A DNA stretch of 63,717 nt, counting the filler, from Perkinsus chesapeaki ATCC PRA-425 (taxonomy: Eukaryota > Protista > Perkinsozoa): assembly GCA_013115145.1 (NCBI GenBank). It is 7 parts of 7 records of this genome, joined end to end, with 100 filler letters (N's around TTAATTAATTAA, not from the genome) between each part and the next. Parts side by side here need not be neighbours in the genome. Positions count along the whole stretch, not along the records: positions 33,413 to 58,157 come from JAAPAO010000538.1; 6 more parts are not named here. One strand, written 5' to 3'. The position numbers and the translations under genes were made by a program. Positions within the stretch are counted from its first letter, which is position 1, and every line of letters starts with the position of its first letter. Below the pieces are notes generated by a model. It ran no database searches. It had not been told where the DNA came from and saw only the letters and a program-made list of their open reading frames with translations. Positions 12,160 to 50,651 of this stretch are shown here, in pieces.

Positions 12160-12762
12160 CCTGTTTAGAATACTCTGACATAATACTCATCCTCTCGTGA
12201 CGCCTCTAGTCCCACGTCTCCGCCAATTTGCGTTCATGTCGCAACAGTTCGGTGAAACATGTGCATGCTCGATACGTTGTTACAAAAGTATATGTTATCG
12301 ACTATGGTTTTATACAGCCATCATACACGGTACATCAGCCGATTTATACACCGTTTCATCGACCAGGAATTCAATTGTGAAGAGGTCTCACTTCTTTACC
12401 TTACGCGGAAGTTAGGTGCCGCGACATGTCACTTATAGACTACATCAAACAAGATTGAGTAGTTACCTTCAATCTGGCTTCAACTTTCAACACCGGAAGA
12501 TCACCGTGACAGTGAATGCTTAAATACTATCCACTGATGAATGTGTGACACAAAGCTGCTGTCCCCTTCACCCTGCCATCACAATCGTAAAATCTTACAG
12601 TAACAATCAGAGAACGACCCACTAGCGAGCTTCTGAACACTGTAGCCACGTTCGCTTGGCTCTTGACTTCCGCAGTGTTTACATGTCGAACAGTCAAATC
12701 CCAGTTCATTACTGAATATGCTTTCTACATCACAGAAATTCTTGACCACAGCAGGTCCCGCC

Positions 12763-14628
12763 ATGCAAAGATTCGCAGCCTTAAGCGGGGTACATTACAA
12801 CTCGAGAACTTCCTTCAGTGACTCTTTCTTTATTCAAGGTATCCTGCGCGCGATATTTATCAACCGCTGCTAACAAGCAGCACCCGAAGCTCTTCGTGCC
12901 GAGGCAATTCTCCACAGCAGCCCCAGCTATGATGGCCGACACCAACAAGGGCATGATCGTGCGCGGCAAAGATGACATGTCGATGGAAGACCTCCCGATG
13001 CCCGGGGCGCCACAGGCTGGGGAATGTCTTATTCGAGTCAAGGAGGTCGGCATTTGCGGATCTGATGTCCATTTCTATAAAAATGGCTCTGTTGGAGGAT
13101 ACGTAAGGCTCTTGCTTACCTAGGTGCGTTAAGCTATTTCAGGATGTCAAATCGCCAATGATCATTGGCCATGAGGGAGCTGGAATTGTTGAGCAACTCG
13201 GCGAAGGCGTTACTGGCCTTAAGGTAACAGGCTGTGTATCTTAAGCTGCGCCGAAAGATTCATTCCAGGTCGGCGACAGAGTAGCCTTGGAGCCAGCAGT
13301 CCCTTGCGGCCACTGTGCTCTGTGCAAATCGGGCAGATACAATCTTTGTCCCGAAATAAAGTACACTTTATGCCAACCTCGACGTCACTATTCTCTCACC
13401 TTAGGTGCTTTGGCACCCCGCCAAACAATGGTTGCATGACACGATACGTTCGCCACCCAGCTTCTATGTGCTTCAAGCTGCCCGATAACGTCTCCCTTGA
13501 AGAGGTGGATTCTTAGGCATCTTAACCACTTCATAGTTTCTTCTTCAGGGTGTTATGATCGAGCCATTGGCAGTCGCCGCTTACGCGTGTATCAACCGAG
13601 CCGAGGTTAAGGAAGGAGACAACGTCCTTGTGTTCGGTGACGGTCCCATTGGTGGGTCAATAACCTTTTCCAGCGTCACGTGACGATATGCTTTCAGGAA
13701 CGATGTCGGCCATGGTAGCATCTGCGTTGGGTGCCAACAGGATCCTCGTGTGCGGTCACCATACTGACAAGCTTGAGGGTATCGTAGAGGACTGCCCAAA
13801 GGCTGAGATACTCAACGTTAAGGGCGCCGGAGACTTCAACAGCGTCGCCGACAGGATCAAGTAGCGGCATTAGCCAAGCCGAGCTTTACCGTATATCTTT
13901 CATGCAGGAGCGTGTTTCAAGGCCCTGCTGACTGCGCAGTTGATACTACTGGTGCTCAGGACGCTGTTTCAGCGTGCATTAGGGCGACTCAATCAGGTAG
14001 CCTTGTCTTCTATTTAGTAGTAGAGTTGTTGATGTTCTGCGGTAGGTGGCAAAGTTGCCATGGTTGGTATCGGAAAGGTTCAGATGGAGTTACCTGTTAT
14101 CGATTCTATTGTTCGTGAAGTTGACGTCAGAGGCAGTTTTAGGTGGGTAGCAGCGTACAGTAGTTTCGCCCAAAGAGTCTTTCTCGATTGGCCGTGCTAA
14201 GGGTGGGTTGAGCCACCCGTCATTGTCTTAAGCTAAGTCTATTTGAAATTTGCTACGACTTGAAGTTAAATTAAATACATATGCTCTGATGCCAATTGAC
14301 GGCACACATTCTTCAAGTGGCGGATACTGTAGAAATCTCTCTATTTGGCTTGTTAATGGCGTTGGCTGGTTAAAGATGCAACTTGGTATGTACCTGCACA
14401 GATTCTGTCACACCTACCCTACATGCATTGACATGATCAGCAGTGGTAAGGTTAATGTGAAGCAGCTTATCACTCATAGGTATCATACCGCTCTCTCCTC
14501 GAACTTGTCAAGATTCAATCAGGTATCACTTCAATAACGATGATGTGTTACAAGCCTTTGAAGACTGCAGCAAGGGTGTTGGCAAGGACGGTCGTTTCAC
14601 TAACAAGTGCATGATTGATATCGATTAA
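12763..14628 (+). CDS. SORD: Sorbitol dehydrogenase, copy 2, with N-terminal mitochondrial-type presequence
   Basis: Spliced start MQRFAALSG|VSCARYLSTAANKQHPKLFVPRQFSTAAPAM; then VKEVGICGSDVHF, MIIGHE, CGHCALCKSGRYNLC, IEPLAVAAYAC, FGDGPIG; ends KCMIDID*. Confidence 0.92.
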
Positions 14629-15122
14629 CTTACTTCGTTCTTCTAGTTGTTCCTTCAATAGTAGCTATCTTCCCTTCAGAACCAGAATCATAAACAATCA
14701 ATTGTCATTATAGACTTTCACCACCAACCCAGAGCTTCTAGTTGGCAGTTCGTCAGGGGTAGACGATGGCTTCCTATCAACCTTCAGTTTGCTCGTACTT
14801 GGGCGTATCAAAATTGTTAGGAGGCTGCTCTTGGGGAGCCCAGCCAAGGCGTCTTTATGGTATTCTCAATCGTTAGTAGTGAGCCATGTGGATCGATGGG
14901 TTCCCGTCTTCACCGAGTGCTTGGGTAGCCTTGTTGTTGCCGGAGTCCACTCGTAGCGGTGAATCTGTTGGTATTGGTAGTGTACTCCTGTTCCTACGTC
15001 CGCGGTTACCGTCATTATTCGATGTAAAGTGTGGGACATTGTCCTCTACCCTTCTTTGTGCTAATATGGTCTAGGCATTGTGACACCACCCTCAGCTAGC
15101 GCTCCAAGCTAGTGGCCTCCTC

Positions 15123-15179: not shown

Positions 15180-15650
15180 ATGCTGCATGCCTATGCTTGG
15201 TTCTAGTTTCCCTTCTTTCCCTCCCTCAAATGCTTACAATGTCCTCATCTCGTTGTATGGTGTGTATGGCAGCACCAGTAGTGACGAAATGCTCTGCAAT
15301 TAGAGGGGTAAGATGCAGTTTAAATTAGTGTTAGTCTATGAACATAATGCTACTGAGTGAAGTTACTGTACGGTGGATTGAATGGGCTCCTCATTTACCT
15401 CTTTTGTCGGGTAGTCCAGAACTTGGCAGTGTCGCCGCGGTGTGGGTAGGAATTGTACACTTTACAAATTAAGTAATGTTATTAATGATTAAACAATGTA
15501 TTAAATGTTTAGTAATTTAATTGTACATTTCAGTGCCAGTGATAATTAAACGAGTGTGTCTTAGAATGGACGGCGCAGAAGCACTATAACTTTTCGCTTT
15601 GTTATTTGACCAGGAACTGTACGTCTGTATAGGCTCGTAGTGAAATATAG

Positions 15651-18250
15651 ATGACCAACTTTGCGGTGTTCATCATCCAAAGCTCAGTTAGCTATACAAT
15701 AGCGCTCACACTTACAGTTGGGTTCTTGATGGGGTCGTCGTCCTCGTTCAGGTGACCGCCAGGAGCCGAAGGCTGTTCTCTTCTACGACTACATCGCGTG
15801 CCAGGCAAGTACCTTTGCTCTTCACACCAGGACCACTAACAACGACCTCGAAGGTGAAGGAGGCCATGCTAATCGACTTGGGTAGTCGAGACACTCGGTA
15901 AAACGGTGATGTTATTGGCCATGGAAAACTCGCGCAGATTCACTGACGTCGTGGTGGACATCCGCAACCAGCTCCTTGCCATTGGCGGCGTCTCCAAAGA
16001 GGACGGTTACGAGGTGAAGCGATTCGTGGAAGGGTTGTTGTTTGACGTTGTACATTGTTTCTCTGTAGTGCGTCATTGTCCAAGGAGCGGGCACCCACGG
16101 CATCGAGGCAGTCCTTGGTAGCGCCATACCACGTGGAGGCAAACTACTTATATTGGCCAATGGAGCGTAGGGCTTCGATATGCTTATGAACTGCCTATTG
16201 CCACATTTCAGGTACGGTGTGAGGCAATCTCAGATTTGCGAGTACCTAGGCATCGACTACAAGCTGATTGATGTACTCACCTTCTCGCTGCTACATTATC
16301 GTTGACCTTTCCTTTCAGTTCACCGACAGGAAGCCTGTGGAGGTATCGGCTTTGGAGAAAGCATTGGCTGAGGACTCTGCTATCACCCATGTCGGCATGA
16401 TACAGCACGAGACCACCGCTGGTAAGCGACCATGGCTTCATTTGCCGGGGCGCGGCGAGTCCAGAGTTGACTTGGAGTAGTATTCGTTACTGGGACAACT
16501 AACGAAGAAGTCTATAAACTTCTTAGTTTGATAAATTCGTTGAATATATAATAGAAGACCACTCACCGTCGCTCAGGTATCTTGAATGACGTCGAAAGTA
16601 TCGGTAAATTTTTGGAGAAGTATCCGAAGGTCGAGCTGATCGTTGATGCTATGTCAAGCATGGGTGCCTATGATATGAGGATGAAGGAGTGGAATGTCAG
16701 GTAGGCAATATCTTGTCAGTGTATCATATGTATGTGTATGAGGAGCAGCTGCAGTTCATATGTGCGTGTATGAGCAGCAGCAGCAGCAGTTCATATGTAT
16801 GTGTATGAGCAGCAGCTGCAGTTCATATGTATGTGTATGAGTAGCTGCAGTTCATATGTATGTGTATGAGTAGCTGCAGTTTATATGTATGTGAATTTCA
16901 AACAATAAAGTAGATGTCTATCGGTAGCTATACTACTGGCACTCCCGTATGGCCTTATTCGCAATATGAAATATCCATAGACGGGTCTTAGCGGTATGAC
17001 GAGGAAAAGTCGGACTACTCCTGGTGCCTACGTTACTGTCCACAAGCCACAGTGGCATGTCCTCTGCGCTGTTCTCTTAAACTCTCCCGTAGCCCATATA
17101 GCGTTGCTTCAGTTACGCCATCTCGAGTGCTAACAAATGCATCGAAGGCGTCCCTGGTTTTTGCTTTGCTCTGTGCAAGCGATCGAGTCTCCTGGCCTCC
17201 GAGGGGAATGCCAGGAGCTTCTGTCTCGACCTCTACGCCCAATGGAAGGGACTAGAGACCACCGGTACGCCTTGATCAGCCCTCGCCGCTGCGACAGTTA
17301 GTTTGGACAGGTCAATTCCGGTTCACACCACCAACGCACGTTATTCTAGCTTTCAACGAGGCACTAAAGGAGTGGACAGCCGAGGGCGGCTTGCAGGGGC
17401 GTTATAACAGATATAAGGAGAACTACGATGTAGGTGCAAGACATAGGTGACGGCCTTTGAATGATGAGCTGTTGTTTCATGTCAGATAATAAGTACTGGT
17501 ATGGAGGAGATGGGCTTCGAGTATTACATAGATGCCGAGCATAGAGGAGTTATTATTACCACTTTTATGCAGCCGGCTCATATGCCTGGCTGGGACTTCA
17601 ACAAATTTTACAAGTTCCTTGGTAAGACTGATGTCGCTGATGGAGTTCAAGTCTTTCATAAAATGAGAAGTGAAATCCTTTTTGATTAATAGTGCTCGAG
17701 ATATTGCAAAGTCCGATCAGTTTTCCTTAGGGAGTCGCAGAGGAAGATCGAATGTTCCCAGAATAAATGCATTTGCCCGTCAAATTTTGACGTTTTCGTT
17801 CGGTCTAGGAATATTTTTTCGATCCAAATTTCCGCTGTATCTCCTCTGCACTAGAAACACTTCTGGCTTCCCGAGGAGCTCTTGTATGTGAGGCTAGACA
17901 AGTCCTTGCTTGCACCGCCTCTCATCGAACGATAACGTGCTTTCGACGTTGGTGGGAAGACTCCAGTGTAGTTTTCGAGGATATCTGGCATCCCAATGTT
18001 GCTTGATTGTTACGTTTGAGTTGTCTCCTTGTAGGTGACAGAGGCCTCGTCATCTACCCTGGCAAGCTGTCGAGCGGCCTATCCTTCAGACTTGGAACCA
18101 TCGGTAGAATAGCGCCCGAGGACTGCCGTGAGCTGCTCGGTAAGAAAGAGTGCAGGCGACCGGATTCGAGTGTTGGTCTTTTTAGGTGCAATTAAAGATG
18201 CCCTCGAGGCAATGGAGATACCGACCCCGATACCCCCTCCAGCGAACTAG
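15651..18250 (+). CDS. phnW: 2-aminoethylphosphonate:pyruvate transaminase (PLP, class V), multi-exon
   Basis: [54 protein letters not shown] (PLP lysine), [30 protein letters not shown]. Confidence 0.93.
16724..16893 (+). repeat. Intronic minisatellite, 29-35 bp units with a variable internal GCA tract, about 5.4 copies
   Basis: TCATATGTATGTGTATGA-(GCA)n-GCTGCAGT repeated inside a phnW intron. Confidence 0.9.
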
Positions 18251-28671: not shown

Positions 28672-28716
28672 CTGAAAATAAGAATGCCGCAGCCGGGAAT
28701 CGAACTTGGGACCTAC
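28672..28716 (-). other. 45-nt GT-AG segment made of a tRNA 3' half (candidate tRNA-derived intron)
   Basis: GTAGGTCCCAAGTTCGATTCCCGGCTGCGGCA TTCTTATTTTCAG; host gene structure unresolved. Confidence 0.55.
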
Positions 28717-33654: not shown

Positions 33655-36307
33655 CATTCCCCTAAAGTCAGTAATAGATCATCCCCAAATAATATGATGA
33701 TCTACCCTCGCCCACGATGGTGGTTGTCGTTCTATGACCTCGTCGATATCGTTTATGCGATTGTCCAAGCAATAGTCATGGCTATACCAGTAGTGGCTCC
33801 CCCTAACCCCAATGCCTGGTATGTGCCTCTTATGGTAAGGCTGGCTAAGAAGCGTTAGCGCCGTCAGACTCCCTCTTCTATTAGGTATTCATGGGCCCGT
33901 CAACTGCACCTCTTGCACCTATGGAGCCGATACCAATGATTATCATCTCCATCGTCTGCATGCTAATGTTTTGCTTCCCGTGTGCCATCGGCTTTCTCGT
34001 CCATTACCTCGGAATGGTGGCATCTGGTGGAACTATGAATCGTGCTTGGGCTTGCTTCGCTGTCCTGCCCTTCACTATGCTGCTTTCTCTGTGTCTTCCA
34101 GAGGCTCGTACTAAGTTCAGCAAGGTTGTATCTCCTGCTCTTATAATGGCTTTCTGTTACGTGCCCGTTGGTTTCTATATGCAGGACCCTTACCTCGAAG
34201 TCGGTACCATGCTACTCTTAGCTCTTTGGTTGCTTGCCATTGCGTGCGGCGTATCAATTGTCTGGAAACTGCTCCACTGGATACCGTACAAGGGACCAGA
34301 ACCACCTCAAGTGTTCGCCTATACATATGCTGACTTCTTCGATATTCTTATCGGTTACTTCGATTCCGCTACCGACCACCCTGAAGTGATTAAAACTACC
34401 TTCGATCAGTTCAATGAAGCGTGCATGGCCCTTGCTCCATGCAAGAAAATATCTCCCCTTGAAAGCGAAGTCATGTGGAACATGGCGGGTGAACTCCTTG
34501 CTCTTTATGACTGTCTTAATGAACATCAGTTCGATCGTATCACCCGAAAGGTGCTTTGGCAACCTTTGGCATCTGAAGTGCTCGATATTCGCTCTGCTGT
34601 GGGACGGGTGATGAGGAAAACCGCTGACGGTGACCCCATAAGAGCAGACATGAATATACAAGAGGATATCGATGCCCTCCAGAAACACGCGGGCGAGGTG
34701 TCCGATACCTTACGAGATTGCCAGGCTCTCGCTGGTAAGGAGCTTGATCGAGTCCAAGTAACTCGTTTTTATTATGCCATCGAGTCGATTCTGTCAATAG
34801 CAGTCTTGGCAGAGAAATACCGAGTTTTGCATGTGAAAGCTGATGAAGCGGCAAAGGAGAAGGCTGAAAAGAATAAGGTAAGCCATAAAGAAAACTGACA
34901 ACGTTATTTTCACTTCTTCAGCAACTGAGCCTCTGTACCAAAACGGCCGGCCTAAGCAAGACCATTTGGAGTGCGATAAAGGGATGGTTGAAGCGGCCAC
35001 TCTTTGATGATCTTCATGGCTCCTCCGATCTTATGTCTCGTATGCGAGTTCCCCTTCGAACCGCCTTTGGCATGAATATTCTTTGCACTATGCTTGTACT
35101 GTGGGGTAACTACAGTGAGATTGTCAGACTTCATGGCTTCTGGGCGGTTATACCACAATACGTTCTTTACCTACCAACTGCTGGTGCCACTCTATTAAAA
35201 GGAACTAGACGTATGATTGGCACCCTACTAGCTGGAGTGGTGTCAGTGCTCTGCCTTTACCTGCATCCTGGCAATATGGCAGCCTTCTTTGTTGAGAACA
35301 TTTTGTTCGTAATCATTGCAAAGCTCGGCCTAAAGGACAAGAGGGTCGGCTACGCTGCTTATGTGTTCTACTTTACTTGGTCAATCATAGGATGGGGATC
35401 TATATTGGTGCCCATGCCCGAATCGCAGCAGTTACAAGTAGCACTGTGGCGTCTTGTCTTCACCACCGGCGGTGTGCTCCTAATGCTTCTTTCGAGCTGC
35501 TTGATATTCCCTAACTTCGCTGCTACTCAATTGATCGAGGCTAGCAAAACATCCATTGAAAGTGTGGCAGAAGATGTGGCTCCCCTTCTACTTGGTGGGT
35601 ACTTGAAAGATTGCGAAGGAGAGGACCAACGACTTGCTGCCCTTGTCGAAAATTGGCAAAACTTTGGCCGAGAGGCATACAATCAGATAGCCTCTCGCAT
35701 TAACTTGAAGATTGATTCAGCTGCTGAGATAGCTGTTTACGGTAGACTTCATTTGGTCCCAGAGCTGAGCAAGCGTGTTTGGCGAGAACAGAAGTACATC
35801 ACCAACATTCAGCGCAGCGGTCTTGTTCTCTTCACTTCGGTGATCGTTCTCTACCCTCACGCTAAAGATCCGCAAATTCAGGACCTCTTCCGCCCTGCGA
35901 CAGATATAATAATAGCATTTGGTAAAGCTGTTCAAGCTTCCGGTACAAGGATGACGGAATTCCTCAAAACCGGTGTCCTGTCCAATGTGTCTGCGGCCGA
36001 TGATGATCTCCACGTTGAAGTTCAAAGATGTCTCGAGGCCATGCACGACTTGCAGGATAGAATCGCGACTGAGTTCTTGGCGAATCCAAACAGGCAGGGT
36101 GATCCATCGGCCATTATGAAGCTGTTCCATGCAGCTTATGCTCTATGCGACTTCGCCACTTCCTGGGAAGAGCTGGAGAATGCCCTTCTGGGCAAAAGGG
36201 TTCCTTGCGAAATGGCTGAGAGTTTACCTAATGAAGGTTCCTCCAATCCTTCTCAGACGGTTCCTACGTTGCGAGGGAGGGTACCATCTTCAGCTACTAC
36301 AGCCTGA
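33655..36307 (+). CDS. ALMT / aromatic-acid-exporter (FUSC-like) multi-pass membrane protein, possibly 5'-truncated
   Basis: ORFs 33891-34898 and 34988-36307 join in frame via GTAAGC..cttcag (KNK|QLSLC); GFWAVIPQYVLYLPTAGATLLKGTRRMIGTLLAG matches the ALMT/FUSC WAV..GAT.KG..R..GTL motif; two TM clusters. Confidence 0.75.
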
Positions 36308-38311
36308 ATACGTCATTCATCCTGTTGCGTTGGCTACAACTGTGACTGTATTCATTTAGAAAACATTATCTTCGTATTCTAAATTGCTGTGGTGCTAGTC
36401 AGTCATAAGAGACGGGATCTGGTACAAACCAGTCTAAAGGTATAATACGTAATGGATGGCGAAAACAACACTACCGAGTCGTAAAGCGAGGTTAGTTGCG
36501 TTACTCGGCGACGAAGGTAGGATGCCTGTCACATTGGGATGTTGAATAGCCCTACCGGAGGCAAACTGGCTAAGCCGCGCAACAAATATCCGCTACGCGT
36601 ACGGAAAGCGCACAATCCTCTGAGGCGCTAAGTCAGATCGGCAGTTGTGCATTGCGGAGCTTGCCTCTTGTTATGTACCCTCTATCGAATGCTTGTCACG
36701 CTTAGATTGTTGTGGCAAGCGTCGGACGATCGTCATTCGTTCACCGGTCCCCCTCAGTGGAGCGAACCGACCCGCCTACCCCGACAACAAGCTTCACGCT
36801 GCGCTGGCTTGGAACGCTTTTTCCAGTGCAGAAAAGCCATTCCCTAGTTCCAAGCTAGGTTGCTACGTGCTGTTCAATAAAATACAAGGCACGGCATGCC
36901 CGCCCGCAGTATTCTCTTGGTGGCTTCAATGTGAGATTTTTCTCACCGTAGGATGCATGAGTTACTTGATCGTGTATTGATCTGCCTCTAAGTTACCTAA
37001 CAAGCGGGTCACACAAACTGCACCATCAGAGAATTTTGCTACTACAACAAGCTGCTAATAAGCAAAGCGACATTGCTGAGAATGGCACAGGTTATTAAGT
37101 AGTCGTTGCAGTGCAGTGTCACGCGAAAGTGACCCCTTTCGAATGATGGTGCGCAAGCCCATCAGTAGCTGTACGCTATAACGCATTTAAAGTACAGTTG
37201 CACGCATATACAGCACTTAAAACAGATCGCTTGCATTTCGGTGACATGCAACACTTTTCATGATCTTTCGTTTGCAGACTTCTTCTCTCCTTCCAGCGTA
37301 TCCTCTATCGATCCCTGAGTGGCCCTGAGAAGGAGGGCAGTGGTGTGCCCGCTGTTCAGCACTGATAGTTACTCACCTTATGGGTTTCTGTGAATCGAAC
37401 ATAGAATGGGGGCCGATCCCACCCATTGAGCAACCGACTCCTTTGAGCCGCTCAAATACTTTACGATTGGGTTGTATCGGTTGTGAGTTTGGCACGGTCC
37501 GCTGCCAACGCACACTTCGTCATGAGGAGGGTCTACGCCTACTAGCTGCTTCCATGTATTATGATCGTGGATGGTAGCCCTCATTGAGGGCTGTATGATA
37601 TCCAGTCCTCGATCCCTGCCAAGCAAAGCTCACCATTGCGTCGGTACAGCGGTCGCGCACAAATGGTCAGAATTGTGACAGCTGTCCCGTTTCCTTCCTT
37701 GATTGATACGGCCTCTAGTTTCAAGGGTTGCCATCCGCGTCGGAATTTCATACCGTATTGGTTGGCACCCACCATACGTTTTTGCCTCCGCAGGTCTTCG
37801 CTCCTGTTTATAGTAAGTGCAATAAGATATGCTAGCAGCGCTGTCTCGGATACTGCAGTAGACTATGGCTATCATACACTGTATGATGTTCGCTATGAAA
37901 TTGCCCAACGTCATAATTAGCTTTCATTTTGATGACCGTTACATGCCTTCAGAGGTTTATTACTGAGTCGGTATTAAACCTCTGAAGTCATGTCAGTAAT
38001 TCTATGAACGAATTCCTGCTGTATACTTGGGTAGGGACAAATACGAGCCAACCTCGCTGGAAGCAGGCAACGGTTGGATTTTCACAATTCTCAAGCTTCA
38101 TTCCTAGCATTAGCAACAGACGTATTAGTGGTAGCTACTTGGTTAGGAGGCTTGAGCAGCGACACCGTGCTAGCTGTTGGAGTATTCCGTTAGCGTCGCC
38201 ACGCAGGCGACCCAGATGATATGCCATTCAACTTGTGTTTCACCAATAACGTGTAATTTGGGGGTTATCGCGAGTGTTCTAGTTGAGGGTAATCGCTCAT
38301 GTCTATCTCAG

Positions 38312-39708
38312 CAGCTGAGTCTCTGGACCAAGATGGTGGGAGGACTTAAGGTCATTGGAGGCGCTGTGAAGAAATGGTTGAAGCGCCCGCTGTTTAACGA
38401 TTTGCACGGCTATTCCGATCTTATTTCCCGTATGCGAATTCCCGTACGAACCGCTTTAAGCATGAGTATAGTTTGCACTATGCTTGTACTGTGGGGTAAT
38501 TACAGCGAGAATGTTAGACTTCATGGCTTCTGGGCGGTCATACCACAATACGTTCTTTACCTACCAACTGCTGGTGCCACTCTATTAAAAGGCACTAAGC
38601 GTATCATCGGTACCTTACTTGGTGGCGCGTTGGCAGTGCTCTGCCTCTACCTGCATCCTGATAATATGGCTGCCTTCTTAGAAGGCCCTTCTATGTTGAA
38701 AATATTCTGCTCGTTATGGTAGCGAAGTGTGGTTTAAAGAACAAGACTATCGGCTACGCTACTTACGTATTCTCTTTTACGTGGATGATCGTTGGATGGG
38801 GTCCATCATGATACCCATGCCCGAGTCCGAGCAATTCTCAGTGGCCTTATGGCGTTTCGTCTTCACCACTGGCGGTGTGCTTCTAGTTATCCTTACCAGC
38901 TGTCTTGTCTTCCCGAACTTCGCTGCTATTCAACTAATCAAAGCGAGTGAGAGGTCTATTCAAAGTGTGGCTGAAGGCATTGCTCCCTTTCTGATTGGTG
39001 GCTCTCTTAAGCAGTGCGAAGGTGACGACGAGCGAATGGCTGCTCTGCTGCAGAAATGGCAAGACTTCGGCCGAGATACGTATACCGAGGTAGCTTCACG
39101 TATTAGTTTCATGGACGATGCCTCTGCGGAGATCGCTGTTTATGGTAAAGTCCATTTGGTGCCCGAGTTGAGCAAGTGGATTTGGTTGAAGCAGAAATAC
39201 ATAACAAACACCCAGCGAAGCGGCCTCGTACTTCTCACTTCAGTGGTGAAACTTAACTCACGCTCAGGACTCGGAGATACAAGAGCTTGTTAGCCCAGCC
39301 ACGCCTAGAATGCGCTCTTACGGAAAAGTTGTTCAAGCCTCTGCGACAAGGATGACTGAACTGCTACGAACTGGTGTCGTGTCCAGTTCCCTTGGTGTTT
39401 CCAATGCCGACGATGATCTCCATGTTGAAGTACAGAGGTGCATCGAGACCATGCAGGAGATGCAGAACCGCATCACCGATGAGTTCTTGGCGAGTCCTAA
39501 CACAAGTGGTGACACTTCTGCCATCATGGAGCTGTTTCCTGCAGCTTACGCATTAAGTGACTTTGCTCTTGTCTGGGAACAGCTGGAAAATGCACTTATG
39601 GGCGAGAGGCCCCCCTGCGAACTTGTTGAGCGCTCGCAACATACCGCGAGCTCTAGCGCTTCTGGAGCGGTTCCTACTCTGCGAGGGATCGCACAGCCTT
39701 CATCCTGA
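38312..39708 (+). pseudogene. Frameshifted partial duplicate of the last exon of the ALMT-like gene
   Basis: Colinear with 34922-36307 from the splice acceptor; 14-nt insertion near 38678, 1-nt deletion near 38800, 2-nt deletion near 39255. Confidence 0.85.
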
Positions 39709-40599: not shown

Positions 40600-43500
40600 G
40601 CTATAGACTCAACCATTGAGGTTATTCCCTCCTAGCTCCGAGTAACCGCTGTATTTTGGCCGGTCTCGGTCACCTATCATAACCAATACTGACCACTGGC
40701 TTCAATACCTACTCATAGGATGGGGCCGCCTAGGGAAGGCTCCCTGTGTGGTGCTGCTGAGTTCCTCCACTATAAGGGAGCTTTGTCTAAAGTCTCTGTC
40801 GAAAGGACGGTTGCCGAGAGCTCGGATGTTAGTCGGTTGCCTGAAAAAATGTGAATCACCAGCATCTTGAAGCACCTTACCCGAGCCCGAGCGACGGAGG
40901 CATACCATACCCCTGTCGGCCGAATCCAGCTTGATACAGTCCAGAAACCTTATCGCCGGGCAGCTGAATACATCAGAATCAAATTCGCTTTTCAAAGGTC
41001 CAGCTCACCAGAACTTGATCCCTTGCTTGCTTAATCATATGTCTGGGATCGGCCAGCTCCACCTCTCTATGCCGGAGAGTCTAAGACACACTGGTCGTAT
41101 CACAATACGCCCTCTTTGCCTACCTGCTGCATTGCCTCCATTTTACTAGCCATCTCCAACAACTTGGTCTGCATCGTCTGATTGTCCCTGCGCATCTCCA
41201 TAACCCCAAAGTCGGCGTGCCAACTCACTTAGCAAGCATTTGGTTATCACTAACGAGCTGGGATGTCTTTGTTTGATGGTATCGCATTTCCAACATCAAG
41301 TGCTTCATATCCTGCTGAGCATTCAGCAGTGCCTCCTAATAAATGACAGCAATTAGGCACTCCCAAGCTGACCGTAGCGCCACCTGAAGGTCCTTCACTT
41401 GCTTATCAGCCCGGCCACTCGCCACCAACGCAGCATGCCCTAGATGACCGGTCTCCAATATAAAGCATGCCCACTCTCCTCCTCCTCACCTCCCTTGCTA
41501 GCTCCTCCAGCGGTTCCTGTCCCTCCACCACGAGCGCCCGCCGCAGCTTCGTTCTGCAGTTTAATAATCTCATGATTAAGTTGATGTATAATATCATTCT
41601 GTTGCTTCATAACCTAACACTCGTATAGATACGACACTTCCACTGGGAACCTCACCGCCGCCGCGTTATTTAGTGGCCGATCGGCCACAGCAGACTTGTA
41701 CATTTCAGCCTCGGCCTGCTTGGCCGCTAACAGCCGTTTGAGCCCTTCAATATCGGCAGATTCATCGCCTTTGCTGGTTTTCAAAGCCAGCGCAGTGCTC
41801 CCAGCAGATCTTTGCTCTCTCTTCTTCAATACAAAACCTATATGACCATGGTGAGCCCAAAAGCCTACTGCTATTAGCCTGTACTATGTAACTATAGGAA
41901 TATTACTAGTATTAATAATCCCATAGTATTATAGTAGTAATTATTAGAACAATTTACTACCATATACGACTCCTAATCTCACAATCTTAGTAATTCATCG
42001 ACGTAAATGTGCCTCTATTTCACATTTTCAAGTGAGAATCGGAATCAGCGAGATCTCTATGCCAATGCGTTATTGATTCGCTAACTATAAGTTGAGCGGG
42101 AGCCAGGTACAGCAGCAGATACGTTCCAGGTTCTTACACTTATTAGTCGACGAGAAATCGTTGAAAAAGTATAGCAATAATTTTCAATGTGAATGGCTAT
42201 ATCTATGCCCCCAAATTCGTGACGCCTACCTTTAGTCTTAAGACGGCTAACTTCCATTTTAGCCACTTCCAGTTCTCCTTGCAAGCATCCCCGACGGATC
42301 TCTGCATCGGTGAGATCCTTCTGCAGCTTAACTATCATCTGTGCCTCCTCTCCTCTTCCATTCAGTTGCTCCTCCAGACGTGCAAGTTCCTACACAAATA
42401 GCATACCCTCCAGCAGTAGCCTCGGTCTCACCTCCTCCTTGGCCATGATGGCCGTCTGTAGTTGTTGGATTTGCAGCCCAAACAGACCTTGAGGCTCCCC
42501 GCTGTTGGCTGCCGTACCGCCGGTAACCGCTTCGAGAAGATCCTCTGTGTCGGCCACATAATCCTGAAATGGCAATTACTTCTGTACCCGGGAAAACAAC
42601 GACCACTCATCAAAGCTACTATGCACCCAACCATTAGATGACAATAGCTACAGACTTCCAGCCTAGGTTGGGAAATTGAGGGTGCTGGTACGGTATCAAT
42701 ACTACCAGATTCCGGGCTTACATAGAAAGCGTAGAAACCTCCCTCAAGTCCCTCCTGGGCTGCATCCAGGCACCTCACCCTTACCTGTATAAAGTCTATT
42801 TCCTTCTGTAACGTCCTCATTGTCTTAATCAAAGGATGCATAGCATCAGCCTCCACTTCCTCTTCGACCTTCTCAGCATCTTCCTCCCCCTGAGCCCATC
42901 CCTGCTCCCCTCATATTTTCACTTCCTTACCTTTTTCCCTCCCTCCTCATCAACATCTGATCCACCACCGTCTGCTGCCTCAGCAGCAGCTGCTGCCTCC
43001 TTCGCCGCCTCCTCAGCAGCTATCCTCTTCTGTTCAGCCTCTATTTCCCGAGCCAACCCTGTCGCCATGACAATCGAATTCACCACCTCCTCCATCGATG
43101 TTATCATCTCCTCAGCCTTCTCTCGAGACGGTACCATATCCGTCTGGTCTCCGACATGGAACCCGATCTAACACAGCCACCCTATATTATAGTTAGTATA
43201 ACTTATATAATGTTAATTATAGATAAAATGTTGATTAAAGATATAATGTTAATTATAGATATAATGTTGATTATAGATATAATGTTGATTGAAGATATAA
43301 TGTTGATTATAGATATAATGTTGATTATAGATATAATGTTAATTATGGATATAATGTTGATAATAAAATATAATACTACTTAATAGTAATATAAATAAAA
43401 TCATTTGTATATCACAAACTGTATTATATATACTGTACAAGTGGACCAGCACTGCTGCTGGTGTCCGTGCTCAACCCACCTTAACAAGATCCCTAAGGAC

Positions 43501-43951
43501 CCTATGTGCTCTCCTAGCCTCCACATTGGCCCCGGCCGCTTGAGAATTAAGCTCCTTTATCTGTCCTTCCAAATCGCTCAACTTCACCAGTATCGGATTC
43601 CTCGCTTGCTCTTCCATCTGAAACAATACGATAACCCACCGACTATGGGACCGAACTGTCTGCGGATGGCAGTGAATTCACGGTCGATAGAAGCATGTCG
43701 AAGCAGTTCCATTTGAATACATCGGCGATGCTACCCTAACCACAGCGTTGTACTTCCACGCACAGTAAGCCTATCAAACGGCGAGAGCGTAGCCTCACCT
43801 CGGGCAACTCGGCATCTTTGATCGATCCTCGTTTCTGCTTGCCATTGCCACTGCCCTTCGCCATCGCCTCCTCCTCTAGAAGCTCATTAGCTCTATCCTC
43901 CTCCTCCTCAGCGAATGCAACTACTTCTAAGAGTGTCTCGCAAATACCTGA
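40600..43951 (-). CDS. Hypothetical large coiled-coil protein, multi-exon; boundaries approximate
   Basis: E/A/K-rich exon-like blocks with GT-AG ends, e.g. EIEAEQKRIAAEEAAKEAAAAAE, LQIQQLQTAIMAKEE, KLQKDLTDAEIRRGCLQGELEVAKMEVSRLK. Confidence 0.45.
43207..43365 (+). repeat. AT-rich 18-bp minisatellite, about 9 copies, intronic
   Basis: ATAATGTT(A/G)ATTATAGAT units. Confidence 0.9.
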
Positions 43952-44070
43952 TACACACAACGTGCCGGAAGCCGCAACAGGGATATAAAAATAAGTCGAC
44001 CTACGTCGTACGAATACTTAATAATAAGATTCACAAACAGAAATGATCAATTTCAATGATGTAATTATTA

Positions 44071-47000
44071 TCAGTAAATGGAAGCTGTAGAAAAAGAAAG
44101 CATGCACCAGTAAAAATACACAGTTATCGATTTCCTACGCTCCATAGGCTCCACCAGGCTAATAGCGTTCTTTGCACTGATGGTTCCCTTCCGTTTCAGT
44201 TGCTCTTGTATAAGGTCCGCTTGACTTGAAATTTTCCTCTGTTGTCCCTCCCCGTCAACTCCGGCACTCGAGGTTGTTATCGAAGTGCCGTGCAGGATGC
44301 TCAACTCAGCCTCGAGCTCTTGGATGCGCTCCAGCTGAAAAAAATGATTCGAAATTCCACCAATGGGGATCGAACCCGGGACCTACCATATCGCCGGAAT
44401 CATCGCCCATGGCACCACCGACGCTCATCACTCCCAAGGCCTTCAGGTGGCATAAATCCTGATCAGCCCTCTCCTTGAATAACCAAGTCTGTAACGTCTC
44501 TGTGTCCGATATCCTCAGCTCGCCTCTCTCTTGGAATGAGAACAAGCCAGACCCCTCGTGTTCCCTCATTATTAACTTGTAGGTCTCATCTCCAACGTGA
44601 GGATGAGAAGGCACGCCGGTCTCAGCAAGCCAGCCGGCTATTTGTACGCCGGGGCCGAAGAACGCGTATTGGGGTGCCTTCACTCGTCCGCCGATAACAC
44701 CAGCATAGGCAACGCCGGTATTAACTCCGATCTTCAGTTTTAAAGTTTGACCGGTACTGCCTATCTTCAACTGTTCGGCTAAAAATACGGAATAATACTG
44801 GAACCGAGAATCGAACTCGGGACCTACTGCGTGTTAGGCAGTCGTCATAACCAACTAGACCATTCCAGCGATGACACGCTTAATTTCACGAAAGACTTGC
44901 CCGTCCATTTCGCTTACCTTTCAAAAGCTTGTTGGCGAATCTCAAAGCGACCTCCGTGTGCTCGTCATTTGTCGACTCGTGACCGCAGATCGCCAAGAAT
45001 CGTTCACCATTCGACAAAACCGGATACATGCCATTGTCCTTGCTGAGCTGATCGAAACTGTTCGTCATTTTATTCATTAATACGACCAATTGAGTGACCG
45101 GCACCGCCTGACCAGGAACCAACAATGCATATCACTCTGCAATGGACTTAACTGAAATTCGCCGTTTAGCGTTTATGACACCTCGGATGTATGGAAAGCA
45201 GTTCAAGTATGATTTAACATTCTTTTATTCTAAATTATTCAAATTAAATATTATTTATATTGAATCCAATATTAAGATCATGCACGCACTAGATCTTCGA
45301 TCGGCGGGTGCGCTAAGGGCATGAAAAATTGCCCCGCAGCGCCTTTGCCGAGGTTGCCATAATCAGCAGTCGACTAGGGCTTGCAATAGTGAGTATAAGC
45401 AACACAACGTCATCGGTGAGTTCTCTTACTTGTGTTATCAGCTCAAACTGGTGAACCACCGCCGAAACACAACTGACGGACTCCAACTTATCAGCTATCA
45501 TTGTTGCTCCTCCTCTTAAACGATCGATTATGAACTTTGGCATTACTCTGCCCATCACCTACCACAGACACACCTTCATTCCCCCCATAGAGGTAATACA
45601 ATAACAACCATTATGTGGCGGCGCGCATCCAAACAACCGGTCTTTAGTATATGTTATAATGCAAAATATGGCATTGCATTCAGACTACTGTACAGCGACC
45701 TTTCAGAAAAGTCATGGAATACAAGAAAGGAGGAAGAGTATCTCCGGTATTTGACAAGAGGCTTTCGCCTCCATAAGGCCTTCCATTTTCTATGCTATGA
45801 TGACCATACGGTAGGAGCCAGACAGAAGGCCAGATGGCCCAAGAAAAACATATGTGTTGCCGATTGGGTCGTATAGAATAACAACACTAAGGAAACTAAG
45901 ATCGCCGACATTCTCACCTCATAATTCACTTTAGCCTTGTTCTCATGCTGGACGTGATATCGATTCCGTATAAGTGCAAATATGTGATCAACAATAATAG
46001 GAAGATTCTCCTCCGTAACCGGCTTGGAATATACCGCTGTTGCTCCTCGTCTGATGGCATCGACTCTGCTGGCGGAATCAGTCGACTTCGTCACAACAAG
46101 GACAGGCACCTGACAGGCTCTGAAATCAACTTCACAGATATTCTCTCTGAACAGGACAGCTAGGCCCACAAAGCCGAGATATGAAAGCATCTTCTATAGA
46201 TTCCTATAGACTTATATAGACTTATAGAGACTTATAGAGACTTATATAGACTTATGTAGACTTATATAGACTTATATAGACTTATATAGACTTATATAGA
46301 CTTATATAGACTTATATAGACTTATATAGACTTATGTAGACTTATATAGACTTATATAGACTTATATAGACTTATATAGACTTATGTAGCCTTATATAGC
46401 CTTATATAGACTTATGTAGACTTATATAGACTTATATAAACTTATGTAGACTTATATAGACTTATATAGACTTATATAGACTTACATTTCGCTATGGAAT
46501 ATATAGCAACTATGAGAGACACCTGTTGCTCAATATAATGCCCAGACTTTTCTGCCTATATGAAATAGTGGCAGCAAACCCATGCTATACCAACGCTGCT
46601 TGACACTGCTACTGTATTATAAATCGGGAATTTTGTGGCGCGTGACTCCTCACCTCCGGCGGTTTCTCCCTTCTAAACTGGCTTAAAAAGTCCAGTCCTG
46701 GCAAGCTTCCCGGCAGCTCCGTTTCCATAATAACAATATCCGGCATCGGATGCGTGTTGAAGTAGTCCAAAGCCGCAAAGCCATCAGCCACAGTGTTAGT
46801 CTTATAAGCTCTATCCACCAGCATCGGCCTCAGCAGCGTTGCAGTGTCATCGCAATCATCGATAATAAGCACCTCCTTAACTGATAGCTCGTTGATGGTA
46901 TTCTGCAGATCTTCTTCATCATCACCTTCACCAGCAACTCCCTCATCAGCCATAACCTGATCGATGAGCTTGTGGTCTCCACCGAGCCAATGACCTGCCA

Positions 47001-50000
47001 TTTTTTGAGCGAGCTCCTTCTTCTGGGCCCGACGCTTGGCCCTGGCATCCACGACCTCTCTGGCGTTACAGACCAAGTCGATGAAGAAAGTCGCTGAGAA
47101 CGATACGATATGTTATATTTTTACCATCATGCAAGCAAAAAAATATCCTTTTCTTAAAAAACGTGCACAAGCTGCTCTGAAAGATTATCCCAACGGCAAG
47201 AGTCTTCGTCCAAGACACCGATCGACTCAACCGGATTCACATCGCTCGCGCAGTATGAAACCGTTCCCATTCCCACATAAAATGATCAACTGTAACGCTT
47301 CTCTACGGCTTCCTAGATATCCTATATAGCGAAGGGATGCACCGGCAACTCAGACTTAACCAGATTTAAATCAGGACATACAGGAGCCAGTGCAACGCTG
47401 GCCGGCGATAATGCGAAATTAGGGTTTGGTGTTCGGGTTTCGGGTTTTCCATCACCTCCACCTACTTCCTTTCCCCATTTCAGATTCGCACCACAGCCTT
47501 CCACCATGCAGATTGATGACCTCATTCGACACCGACAACCCCAAGCCAAGACCTTCGTATCTGATCGCCCGGAGCTGGCTCAACCTCGGGAGCAAAAAGT
47601 GCAAAGTTAACAGGACGGGAATGTTCGTTGGCATGGAAGAAAAGGATATCAAAAGATAGGTTAAGCGAGCGCTTGATGCATCCCATGAGGAAGATTCGGT
47701 GTTCTTCTGAAAAACTTGAGGAACTTCTTTAACACTTAGCAACTTTGAAACTTCTATGTGATACGAATTCTTGTGAAACGGCTAGACTGGAGTTATGATT
47801 TCTATCACAGCTGTGCGTTGATGTTGTGAAAGTCAGGCTTCAACCTATGATGCGCCTTAAACCTCGAAAGGAATTACTTCCGATTCTCATGATCATCATC
47901 TTCCTGTTCGAACTCCGTGAAGATGCGCTTCACATTCTGGTCGGCAATACCAATACCAGTGTCCACTATCTTTATTAGAACCTAAAAATGCTCCATGCCG
48001 GGATCGAACTCGGGACCTCTTCCTACCCCTCTCGCCTTCCCTTTAGTCATAACCTTCACAGAGCCTTTAGACGTGAACTTGCATGCATTATTAATCAATG
48101 CTGACATCACGTATTCCAACCTAAGTCACGCGCCATAAAACTCGACCTCTACTGTGGAGCGAACTACACTTAAGTGAACACAGGGGGAGAAGTACAAGTC
48201 ACCACACAGTGATTTTTATAATAAGTTATGATCTATAAAAGAGGAGGAGTATACAACAACACTGTATATGCTATCATTAGACAATGTACTTATAAATCAG
48301 AGGTCACGCGACAATCATCTAGTTTGAATCTCGAATAGTTACTAAAAAATCTCCGTAGCTGGTAAGATTTACCTCGGGCTGGTAAGATGCGCCAAAATGG
48401 AAAAGACGATTCGAAAACGTTACCATCAAATCTACGTTATTGAGAGCCTGTTAATAAAGAGAAAGGATGGAATACGAGAATAGCCAGCAAAAAGGAGAAA
48501 ATAAGGAATTCACCCTCCTTAAGAAGCGTCACCTTTTTCCATTGCACATTTCTGATAGAAAAAGAGTGTCTATTCGTAGAATAGACACCCGAGAGGAAGG
48601 CCAAAGATTCTCTTGCCTGTCCTTGTCGCCCTCCACTTCAGGTGCGGCCGGATCCGGAAAGAACTCGAGCTCGACTTTGTCCTTCTTGATTTTCCTCCCG
48701 CGCTTGTCGACAGCTTCAACCATCTCCGCACAGACATGCTCACAAATCTCATTCATCTACTTCAATCAATCAGTCACGCGCCACAAAATACCTCCTACCT
48801 GAACCATACCAAAGTTAAGCTGCATTTTCTTAGTCTTCAGTGCTGCCATGTCCATAATCTCGTTCACCAACGCCAACAGTCGGACCTTTAAAAAAACTTC
48901 GCTCCGCTAGAACCCCCTCCGCCTTACCGCGCAATTGTTAATGATATCCAAATGCTTCTTCCGGCCAGCATTTGGCTCCGTCATCCTCAGTGACTCCGAC
49001 AGGCCGATGACGCCATTCAAAGGCGTTCCTGAAAGGCACTGCCAAAACGTTCCCCACAGACGTCCCACTTAGTTCATGATTCACAGTGGCCATAAAACTG
49101 TCCTTCTTTTTCTCCAGTTCACATATTTTCGTGCAGTCCCTCAGTATGGCACAAAGCGTGTAGTCGGCCGGATCCGAGTCGAAACTGAACAACAATTTCG
49201 CACCAGTAGCATTCTACAATTTTTCACAGGACTTAAAGAGGAACCTCAAATGGTCCAAGAAGGAGCGCGTGTGGCGTTCCTTCGCTCTAAGGACATATTT
49301 CCTAACAAAATTCCCATGGTACCTCCCCCGGATTGGGAATAGTCTTTCGCCTCGGGCAACACTCGCCCCAGTTTTATTACAGGATAGATACATATAAGGA
49401 ACTCGGGGTGACCTGCCCATCCTTATGCTTCACTTCAACATTCCTAGTCTCATCCACATGTACTCCTGAACCATAACAATTAATACCATATTTCCGTCAA
49501 CTCTTACTAGGTCGCCTATTAGGATCGGTGGCCATGGCCTCGTCCGCTTTCTTAACAAATTGCTGAAGCATAGCGTCGTGCGCTACTGCCACTCTATCCG
49601 GCATCAACATCTTGATATCTCGACCGATCAACTCGTCTGCTTTGAACCTGAGAGCTTTCGTTATGAACTTTCATGCAATCTATACGTCAAAAAAGGAGAA
49701 TACTATTTTAGTGGTATCTTCACGAGTGGGAGATAATACGAGCAAACTTGTCGGCTAAAGACTAGAAAGATCAAAAAAATTTACTTTTCCACCATTTTAC
49801 TAACTATTTCTAGTAATTTTTCAAACTTTACTTTTCTTACAAAATGATAAAGTAAAAATCCGAATTTGTAATACCAATATTCCATAATTGCGTATTGGCA
49901 ATGTTCCAGAAATTTCGAGTGGGCCGGAGAAGGTCTCGCTACCGTGAGCCGACGACTGTCGAAATGTGCCACTGGGATTGACACCTCGCCTTGGCTTTGA

Positions 50001-50651
50001 AAGATGCGAAATCCAGAATCGATTTTTCTTATCTTCGATAAGACGATTGATTCATTAAGGGATGCCACTGACGTGTATAATTTCTTCTGAATGAGTATGA
50101 CGTCCTAACAAAGTCGAAATTACTAACTTTCGAAAAGTTACTTTTCTCAATCTAGTGGTCCACCAAACAGATACTGAAACATAGGGGATCGATAGTAGAC
50201 CAGTTGGGAATCGACATGAAATGCGATACCAGCATTAACAGAGAATTCCGCCGAAATAGCAAAGTATACATCTGTTTAAGAGACACGTCCTATGGAAGTT
50301 TACGATGATACCGTCAAAATACGTTTTATTGACATCTGTCAAACTATTGCTATTTTAGAGGGAACACCCCTAAGCAAGTTTAGTCTGTAAAGATGAGTAT
50401 CTTTTAGAAACTAAAAAAGATACGTTTTACTAACTTGCGTAGTAATTATTTTAACATTGGCGTATCTTTTAATCCTTGCTCTATTATATATTCCTAATAA
50501 CATCTTCCCACTATTACCCAGTCCAAGCCTCTGATTGGCTATTCCCGTAAACTATCTTTCCTTGTCGATCAGCCAGGATTACCAAGTCATCTGAGATCTC
50601 GGCAAAGGAATCCATTCCCCGCCAGAATGGATTATTTTGGCAGTCGACCAT
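44071..50651 (-). CDS. Hybrid signalling protein: PAS - HisKA - HATPase - receiver - class III nucleotide cyclase-like domain, many exons; ends approximate
   Basis: PAS SDDLVILADRQGKIVYGNSQSEAWTG|FKADELIGRDIKMLMP; H-box ATVNHEL|RTPLNGVIG; N-box LINNACKFT; G1 IVDTGIGI; G2 GLGLGLSV; receiver VLIIDD..PDIVIME..|VLVVT..YSKP; cyclase LKIGVNTG..YAGVIG..PQYAFFG. Confidence 0.88.
44335..44386 (-). other. 52-nt intron made of a tRNA 3' half
   Basis: GTAGGTCCCGGGTTCGATCCCCATTGGTGGAA TTTCGAATCATTTTTTTCAG; removal joins ..SGDM|LERIQELEAEL in frame. Confidence 0.8.
44796..44869 (-). tRNA. tRNA-Val (AAC) inside intron 44779-44917 of the kinase-cyclase gene, same strand
   Basis: GCTGGAA/TTCCAGT acceptor stem, ACTGC-CT AAC AC-GCAGT anticodon arm, CCGAG TTCGATT CTCGG T-arm. 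Confidence 0.93.
46191..46484 (+). repeat. 10-bp tandem array (CTTATATAGA), about 29 copies, in the intron splitting the receiver domain
   Basis: Directly visible, with CTTATGTAGA and CTTATAGAGA variants. Confidence 0.95.
47982..48026 (-). other. 45-nt intron made of a tRNA 3' half
   Basis: GTAGGAAGAGGTCCCGAGTTCGATCCCGGCATGGAGCA TTTTTAG; removal joins KGKARG|VLIKIVDTGIG; unspliced it ends in an in-frame TAG. Confidence 0.85.

Follow-up and report, generated by a model that had tools for sequence, protein, structure and literature searches.

Minimal Perkinsus introns that resemble the 3′ halves of tRNA genes and retain a conserved B box

Introns A and B of a kinase-cyclase gene

The window analyzed here is a stretch of 63,717 nucleotides (nt), filler included, from Perkinsus chesapeaki ATCC PRA-425 (assembly GCA_013115145.1), in which seven parts of the genome are joined end to end. 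Its 24,745-base piece from JAAPAO010000538.1 (positions 33,413 to 58,157; 47% G+C) contains a kinase-cyclase gene, which consists of PAS, HisKA/HATPase_c, receiver(s) and class III cyclase domains followed by a coiled-coil tail. This host gene is interrupted by an intron with an intact transfer RNA (tRNA) gene, tRNA-Val, and by two introns of 52 and 45 nt, introns A and B, which resemble the 3′ half of a tRNA (Table 1). The domains of the host gene are Pfam matches on its exons, and its extent was obtained by tblastn with the P. marinus protein P0157 and the P. olseni protein P0151. The comparison was made with the orthologues in P. olseni (locus L001) and P. marinus (locus L002). In the best-aligned exons, the host gene is 84–89% identical to that of P. 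marinus and 89–91% identical to that of P. olseni, and the cyclase exon shares 94% protein identity with P. olseni P0001. The annotation splits the orthologues into two or three separate genes; the paralogue P0173 is a single protein with the same architecture as the host gene.

Table 1. Location of the introns, tRNA gene and related features (window positions, unless residues are given)
Feature	Location	Strand	Basis or remark
Host gene, PAS to coiled-coil tail	40600..50651	-	Approximate limits
Intron A, 52 nt: donor GTAGGT, T arm, acceptor strand, A, T-rich tail, CAG	44335..44386	-	Sequence; R1 21.1 bits
B-box/T-loop core of intron A, tRNA positions 52-62	44366..44376	-	Exact GGTTCGATCC pattern match
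Cyclase-domain exon, between tRNA-Val intron and intron A	44387..44778	-	Pfam Guanylate_cyc, E=5.6e-12
Intron hosting tRNA-Val, 139 nt	44779..44917	-	Frames join as ...KLLK/AEQLKIG
Intact tRNA-Val(AAC) gene	44796..44869	-	ARAGORN; Rfam RF00005, 64.5 bits
Intron B, 45 nt: donor GTAGGA, tRNA positions 44-73, TTTTT, AG	47982..48026	-	Sequence; R1 17.8 bits
B-box/T-loop core of intron B, tRNA positions 52-62	48000..48010	-	Pattern match
Sense tRNA-half introns of P0160	residues 303, 575, 611, 649, 918	sense	
Antisense tRNA-half introns of P0160	residues 208, 463, 813, 870, 1103, 1315, 1628	antisense	

The tRNA-Val gene, already recognized when the sequence was read without database searches, was found by both ARAGORN and Rfam, and it was the only feature that the Rfam scans of the piece reported, by gathering threshold or by E-value. 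Its sequence is unchanged (100% identity) in P. olseni and P. marinus, amid intron sequence that is unalignable. It lies on the same strand as its host gene, and its T-run is followed almost directly by the acceptor AG of the intron. In the three-species alignment, the tRNA-Val intron is 136 nt long in both P. marinus and P. olseni. It also contains an internal GTAGGT, and a deletion up to this point would leave a 49-nt intron of the same design as intron A.

Intron A begins with GTAGGTCCCGGGTTCGATCC, and its first 20 nt match tRNA-Val positions 42–61 at 18 of 20 sites; its donor coincides with tRNA positions 42–47. Intron B shares the exact 16-mer AGGTCCCGAGTTCGAT with tRNA-Val, followed by an acceptor-like strand, an A and TTTTTAG; its tRNA part comprises the variable loop, the T arm, the acceptor strand and the discriminator A. 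This resemblance was quantified with R1, a 30-position covariance model of tRNA positions 44–73 that was trained only on four genuine tRNAs of Perkinsus (the 3′ halves of tRNA-Val, tRNA-Glu, tRNA-Arg and tRNA-Phe) and searched against 193 kb. Intron A was matched at E=0.0025 and intron B at E=0.027, and their orthologues and about 20 further copies also match the model. The resemblance of introns A and B to tRNA 3′ halves is real; indeed, the sequence-only reading had described both as built from tRNA variable loop, T-arm, acceptor strand and T-run, and R1 agrees. Neither intron has an Rfam match even at E≤10 in windows of 120–130 nt, and neither forms a complete cloverleaf.

Not every part of the earlier description holds for both introns. 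The third segment that it named, at 28672–28716, lies outside the piece. The donor had been equated with a junction within the tRNA, which is correct for intron A, but the donor of intron B lies 6–10 nt upstream of the variable loop. The 3′ end is of the gene type: intron B has A-TTTTT-AG without CCA, and the sense copies in the paralogous gene described below have the same design. Since CCA is absent, the source of introns A and B was a gene or a primary transcript and not a mature tRNA. The T-run could also be the pyrimidine tract of the intron. In the P. olseni copy of intron A, 22 of the 30 core positions match tRNA-Val (our own count), and it is thus possible that this intron is a local copy of the neighboring tRNA gene.

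Several other candidates were discarded. Relaxed ARAGORN searches returned mostly noise, and a 95-nt “tRNA-Gly” over intron A was dismissed because of its weak 6-nt acceptor pairing and an extra loop of about 27 nt. The upstream exon of intron B was considered as an exonised tRNA 5′ half and rejected, as the spacing of the spliced HATPase_c domain is within 2 residues of that of the paralogue. The T loop was set aside as a branch point, as it fits YURAY poorly and the core sits in the 5′ half of the introns.

Introns A and B occupy identical positions in P. olseni and P. marinus, and the flanking frames are conserved. Their lengths, 52/47/48 nt for intron A and 45/48/49 nt for intron B in the three species (first figure P. 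chesapeaki), vary by non-multiples of three, which identifies them as genuine introns. The independently annotated P. olseni and P. marinus proteins join ...DDSGDM/LERIQ... exactly across intron A. Intron B ends with an in-frame TAG stop, and its removal restores the HATPase_c domain, whose profile is split at positions 38/39. Judged by these comparisons, A and B are genuine GT-AG spliceosomal introns. The comparison of orthologues proposed along with the sequence-only reading therefore established that the introns are real and present in P. olseni and P. marinus, but it revealed no intron-less orthologue.

A family of tRNA-half introns with a conserved B box

The survey covered two paralogous loci in three species plus flanks. 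The paralogue set consisted of P. olseni P0160 (locus L003), its P. chesapeaki orthologue (L004) and a second P. olseni locus (L005), and the exon structures of five genes were rebuilt from annotated proteins. In P0160, at least 12 of the 42 introns carry the tRNA-3′-half core, five in sense and seven in antisense orientation. Several of them are 44–53 nt long and made wholly of tRNA-half sequence. Another intron of P0160 houses an intact tRNA-Phe gene, also antisense. One further antisense copy lies in an intron of the Brix gene, the neighbor of the host gene in P. olseni and P. marinus. With at least 12 more members in the paralogue and one in the Brix gene, the suggestion that introns A and B belong to a family is confirmed.

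In the 193-kb search, R1 matched 10 true tRNAs and, at E<1, about 25 partial copies, with E-values down to 3e-6. The matches inside the five rebuilt genes are all intronic and mostly fill introns of ≤80 nt (P about 3e-4 per gene). R2, a covariance model of equal power for the 5′ halves of the four tRNAs used for R1, found the same 10 tRNAs in 206 kb and no 5′-half relic better than E=0.39. The elements are therefore 3′-half-specific.

Two of the copies deserve separate mention. The copy in a chromo-domain gene (L003 3267–3296, L005 3571–3600, and L004 744–773) consists of a T arm, an acceptor strand and TTTTT and scores 22.8 bits. The reading frame there is unbroken and conserved in length, and at synonymous sites the species share the same T-loop bases; this copy may be an exonised tRNA fragment. 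The intron at residue 611 of the paralogue (L003 13686–13757, L004 14546–14622) combines an anticodon arm of the Glu(TTC) type with a T arm, and in P. chesapeaki a weak 5′-half match begins 13 nt inside the upstream exon. This intron may be the relic of a nearly whole tRNA.

Other repeated modules were observed in the introns of the paralogue: AAATCGATCA...GGGCGCGCGCTTTT, the palindrome ATCGATCACGTGATCGAT, runs of TTTTCCGGAAAATTT, and ATCTTGCAATCTTGCATTT. They are located at 13291–13343, 15552–15603 and 15751–15816 in L003 and at 12316–12524, 14980–15020, 15734–15893 and 17178–17236 in L004. For some of them, the sequence is conserved in P. olseni and P. chesapeaki despite near-saturated neutral sites, and the modules may represent further families of intron-building elements. 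The L003 and L005 loci come from two assemblies that both carry the name P. olseni; in the paralogous gene, 19% of four-fold sites and 5% of residues differ between them, and they may represent divergent haplotypes or cryptic species.

Neutral sites are strongly diverged among these species. At four-fold sites, P. olseni is 36% identical to P. chesapeaki and 50% identical to P. marinus, and ordinary introns are unalignable between Perkinsus species. Identity was computed by tRNA region over 12 orthologous element sets. The B box (positions 52–62) is identical at 63/66 sites in the antisense members (0.95; binomial P about 7e-16 vs 0.5) and at 87/110 sites in the sense members (0.79). The 5′ T-stem (49–51) has identities of 0.94 (antisense) and 0.73 (sense), and the variable loop (44–48) of 0.77 and 0.88. 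The values are 0.39 and 0.50 for the 3′ T-stem (63–65) and 0.48 and 0.45 for the acceptor region (66–73). The conserved block is thus a primary sequence around CCnGGTTCGAwyCC, in either orientation. Conservation of a hairpin was considered and rejected, as positions 63–65 drift neutrally. Because the B box is kept while the strand that pairs with it drifts, selection appears to act on the DNA motif, not on a hairpin. The B-box core is kept in all three species in intron B, and it is kept in P. olseni in intron A.

The neutral drift of the acceptor region also bears on the origin of the individual copies. The introns had been assigned to different source tRNAs on account of their different acceptor strands; as this region drifts at the neutral rate among orthologues, source tRNAs are not inferable from it, and the claim is not supported.

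The B box is the defined binding site of transcription factor IIIC (TFIIIC). In the tRNA-half introns, the B-box consensus GGTTCGANNCC is present without a working class III gene, and it is conserved across species above the neutral rate. These B boxes are most plausibly orphan sites of the extra-TFIIIC (ETC) kind, which is the interpretation that we prefer on the strength of this sequence conservation.

Other features of the locus

The remaining observations concern the host gene and its surroundings. The host-gene intron at 49650–50511 (minus strand) is about 860 nt long in the window, whereas the orthologous introns of P. olseni and P. marinus measure only about 40 nt. At 46205–46484, a 10-nt tandem repeat (TATAGACTTA, 28 copies) fills the intron between two receiver-domain exon blocks, and the P. 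marinus intron at the matching position measures 49 nt. A tandem array with an 18-nt unit in nine copies (43205–43374) lies within the coiled-coil tail region, and the contig ends (33413–33623 and 58053–58157) carry tandem arrays with 23-nt and 21-nt units. In the P. olseni assembly, the orientation of the receiver-domain exon block (L001 8843–9271) is opposite to that in the window and in P. marinus, and the annotation treats the block as a gene of its own on the minus strand; the inversion is either real or due to misassembly. Two adjoining ALMT/FUSC-like transporter genes are located on the plus strand at 34988–36307 and 38177–39293, and this end of the contig shows no synteny with the Brix/RPL23/clathrin neighborhood of P. 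olseni and P. marinus.

Age and origin of the tRNA-half introns

In the paralogue, P. olseni and P. chesapeaki have the same intron positions throughout. Since introns A and B are common to three species and the paralogue positions to two, the elements predate the species split. In contrast, over ~790 aligned residues, no more than one to three of roughly 27 intron positions are common to the two paralogues, so the duplication was followed by the gain or the differential loss of most introns. Introns are absent from the outgroup homologue, but its genome is compact, which makes this only weakly informative. The sequence-only reading had proposed a route of intron gain. The paralogue-specific positions fit gain after duplication, but all members pre-date the species split and no gain event was caught.

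Collectively, these observations show that introns A and B are GT-AG introns derived from the 3′ parts of tRNA genes, and they make it probable that both belong to a Perkinsus-wide set which arose by insertion and whose B box is under selection. Insertion is the simplest reading because the minimal members are wholly tRNA-derived. According to this scheme, before the divergence of the Perkinsus species, coding sequence would have received insertions of 5′-truncated or partial tRNA-gene copies, some of them perhaps copied from a tRNA gene already within the same host gene. The insertions would have survived where the local sequence could be spliced as a minimal intron of ~45–55 nt. A sense copy could use G-T-A-G-G, at the junction of anticodon stem and variable loop, to form its donor, and its T-run with the following AG to form the 3′ end; for an antisense copy, the donor could come from GTGGG or GTAGG in the complement of the T-stem/acceptor. 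After insertion, the tRNA identity would have decayed, while the B-box block (about 44–62) would have been held by purifying selection and kept as a DNA motif, a putative TFIIIC-binding site inside the gene. A more specific version, in which a burst of intron gain from tRNA-gene 3′ fragments, inserted in either orientation, preceded the species split and the B boxes were co-opted as TFIIIC sites, is offered tentatively, as possible rather than probable.

The most serious rival is decay in place, in which full tRNA genes died within older, longer introns that then shrank to ~45–50 nt, with no intron gained. Both host genes indeed contain an intact intronic tRNA gene, one sense and one antisense, and the internal GTAGGT of the tRNA-Val intron means that one deletion would suffice to yield the design of intron A. 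Moreover, the intron at residue 611 retains an anticodon arm and possibly traces of a D arm, and selection on the B box would account for the survival of the 3′ part. However, many precise deletions would be required, each leaving the exon ends in frame, and about 25 elements include no 5′-half relic. Furthermore, almost no positions are common to the paralogues, so the supposedly old introns would themselves be post-duplication. We consider decay in place rather unlikely. The signals used for splicing bear on another proposal, namely that the sense tRNA 3′ end and its terminator form a ready-made cassette of donor, polypyrimidine tract and AG. The donor in 111 rebuilt introns (median length 52 nt) follows G/GTRRG, and GTAGG is among the three commonest forms; the tRNA junction G-T-A-G-G thus fits the Perkinsus donor consensus. 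In intron A and the intron at residue 303, the donor is the 42–47 junction, and the T-run plus AG forms the 3′ end. Nevertheless, 7 of the 12 paralogue members and the Brix member are antisense, and several sense members, intron B included, have a donor outside the tRNA part. An antisense tRNA part provides neither the proposed donor nor the T-run and AG, the donor of the antisense members coming from the complement of the T-stem/acceptor (GTGGG, GTAGG), and hence the cassette is not required. The idea, first put forward in the sequence-only reading, accounts for some members only, and as the sole mechanism it is improbable.

Two further explanations were considered. The first is that the elements are functional as RNAs, either tRNA-like T-arms that tRNA enzymes process to small RNAs or the halves of split tRNA genes; in its favor, some copies have a fully paired T stem, such as that at residue 303 in P. 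olseni. Yet the 3′ strand of the T-stem evolves at the neutral rate, so that pairing is not maintained, and antisense copies are conserved no less than sense copies. Matching 5′ halves, as in split or permuted tRNA genes, were not found nearby with R2 in 206 kb, and this explanation is very improbable. Chance or convergence, by which a GGWTCGAWCC-like intron motif of Perkinsus merely resembles the T loop, is favored by the enrichment of ATCGAT/GATCGA words in the paralogue introns. However, R1 was trained on real tRNAs only and still yielded E-values down to 3e-6. In addition, the AGGTC variable loop, a 7-nt acceptor-like strand, the discriminator A and the T-run all occur in register, and one copy has a Glu-type anticodon arm. 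Coincidence is thus scarcely credible.

Several points weigh against an origin by insertion followed by selection on the B box. No species-specific presence or absence, which would show insertion directly, was seen among the members. Complementary intron loss in the paralogues would fit the observations as well, and so would older introns that were invaded and then shrank. The B-box core of intron A is partly decayed in P. marinus, so the constraint is not universal, and the conserved stretch runs somewhat beyond the classical 11-nt B box. The sample, two paralogous loci in three species, is small and gene-biased. The density of copies is uneven, as an unrelated 13-kb locus of the same genome contains no R1 copy, and the chromo-domain copy sits in an open reading frame instead of an intron. 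The only RNA runs listed for P. chesapeaki, two tiny ones (X1 and X2), contained nothing from the stretch.

Well-documented sources of new spliceosomal introns are introners of the transposon type and double-strand-break repair. Like the introners of Micromonas, Aureococcus, fungi and dinoflagellates, the tRNA-half introns share a recognizable inserted sequence among many introns of one genome. In both cases, positions are lineage- or paralogue-specific, both orientations can be spliced, and the insert supplies part of the splice sites. An insert reaching the intron ends is found in many introns here, namely in at least 12 of the 42 introns of P0160, in introns A and B and in the Brix gene, with similarity confined to the tRNA core. 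Unlike in introners, the module is a ~30-nt piece of a tRNA gene rather than a transposon bounded by terminal repeats or target-site duplications; indeed, no junction duplications were seen by eye, and the members lack the hallmarks of transposons. The copies are also old and alike in the tRNA core only, and no mobile master element was found.

ETC sites are orphan B boxes that are conserved between yeast species and mostly intergenic. They share with the present elements a lone B box without a working tRNA gene, conserved amid drifting surroundings, that would act as a DNA site in either orientation. In the Perkinsus genes, by contrast, the motif lies inside short introns of protein-coding genes and largely makes them up, and TFIIIC binding is putative. 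With tRNA pseudogenes and tRNA-derived short interspersed nuclear elements (SINEs), the elements share a dispersed distribution and an origin from tRNA genes transcribed by RNA polymerase III (Pol III). However, SINEs have a tRNA 5′ part with A and B boxes, a non-tRNA body and a tail, whereas these elements are 3′ halves only, 30–50 nt long, with a native T-run; a 5′ head with A and B boxes plus a body was not found, R2 having detected no relics. In Perkinsus itself, P. marinus has unusually many tRNA gene copies, which are targeted by Dada transposons, elements of 4.7–11 kb that insert into tRNA genes (PMC3706591). Dada elements likewise involve Perkinsus tRNA genes in DNA rearrangements (PMC3706591), but no such transposon flanks the tRNA-half introns.

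In full-text literature searches, spliceosomal introns derived from tRNA were described neither for Perkinsus nor for any other organism. Nor were any found in the survey of Perkinsus introns, the Dada paper, the genome paper on Amoebophrya or the two large introner surveys, and the introner surveys searched made no mention of tRNA, SINE or Perkinsus. The tRNA-half introns are apparently undescribed. Introns made from tRNA genes would add a source of spliceosomal introns that is based on Pol III genes, and they would give a dated, sequence-tagged cohort of introns in an alveolate parasite at the base of the dinoflagellates. They also matter for annotation, as introns of 45–52 nt, some of which keep the reading frame, are prone to be mis-annotated. 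The conserved orphan B box in minimal introns suggests that Pol III factors mark the bodies of genes transcribed by RNA polymerase II in this lineage. If this is true, a large set of minimal introns would double as chromatin or transcription landmarks.

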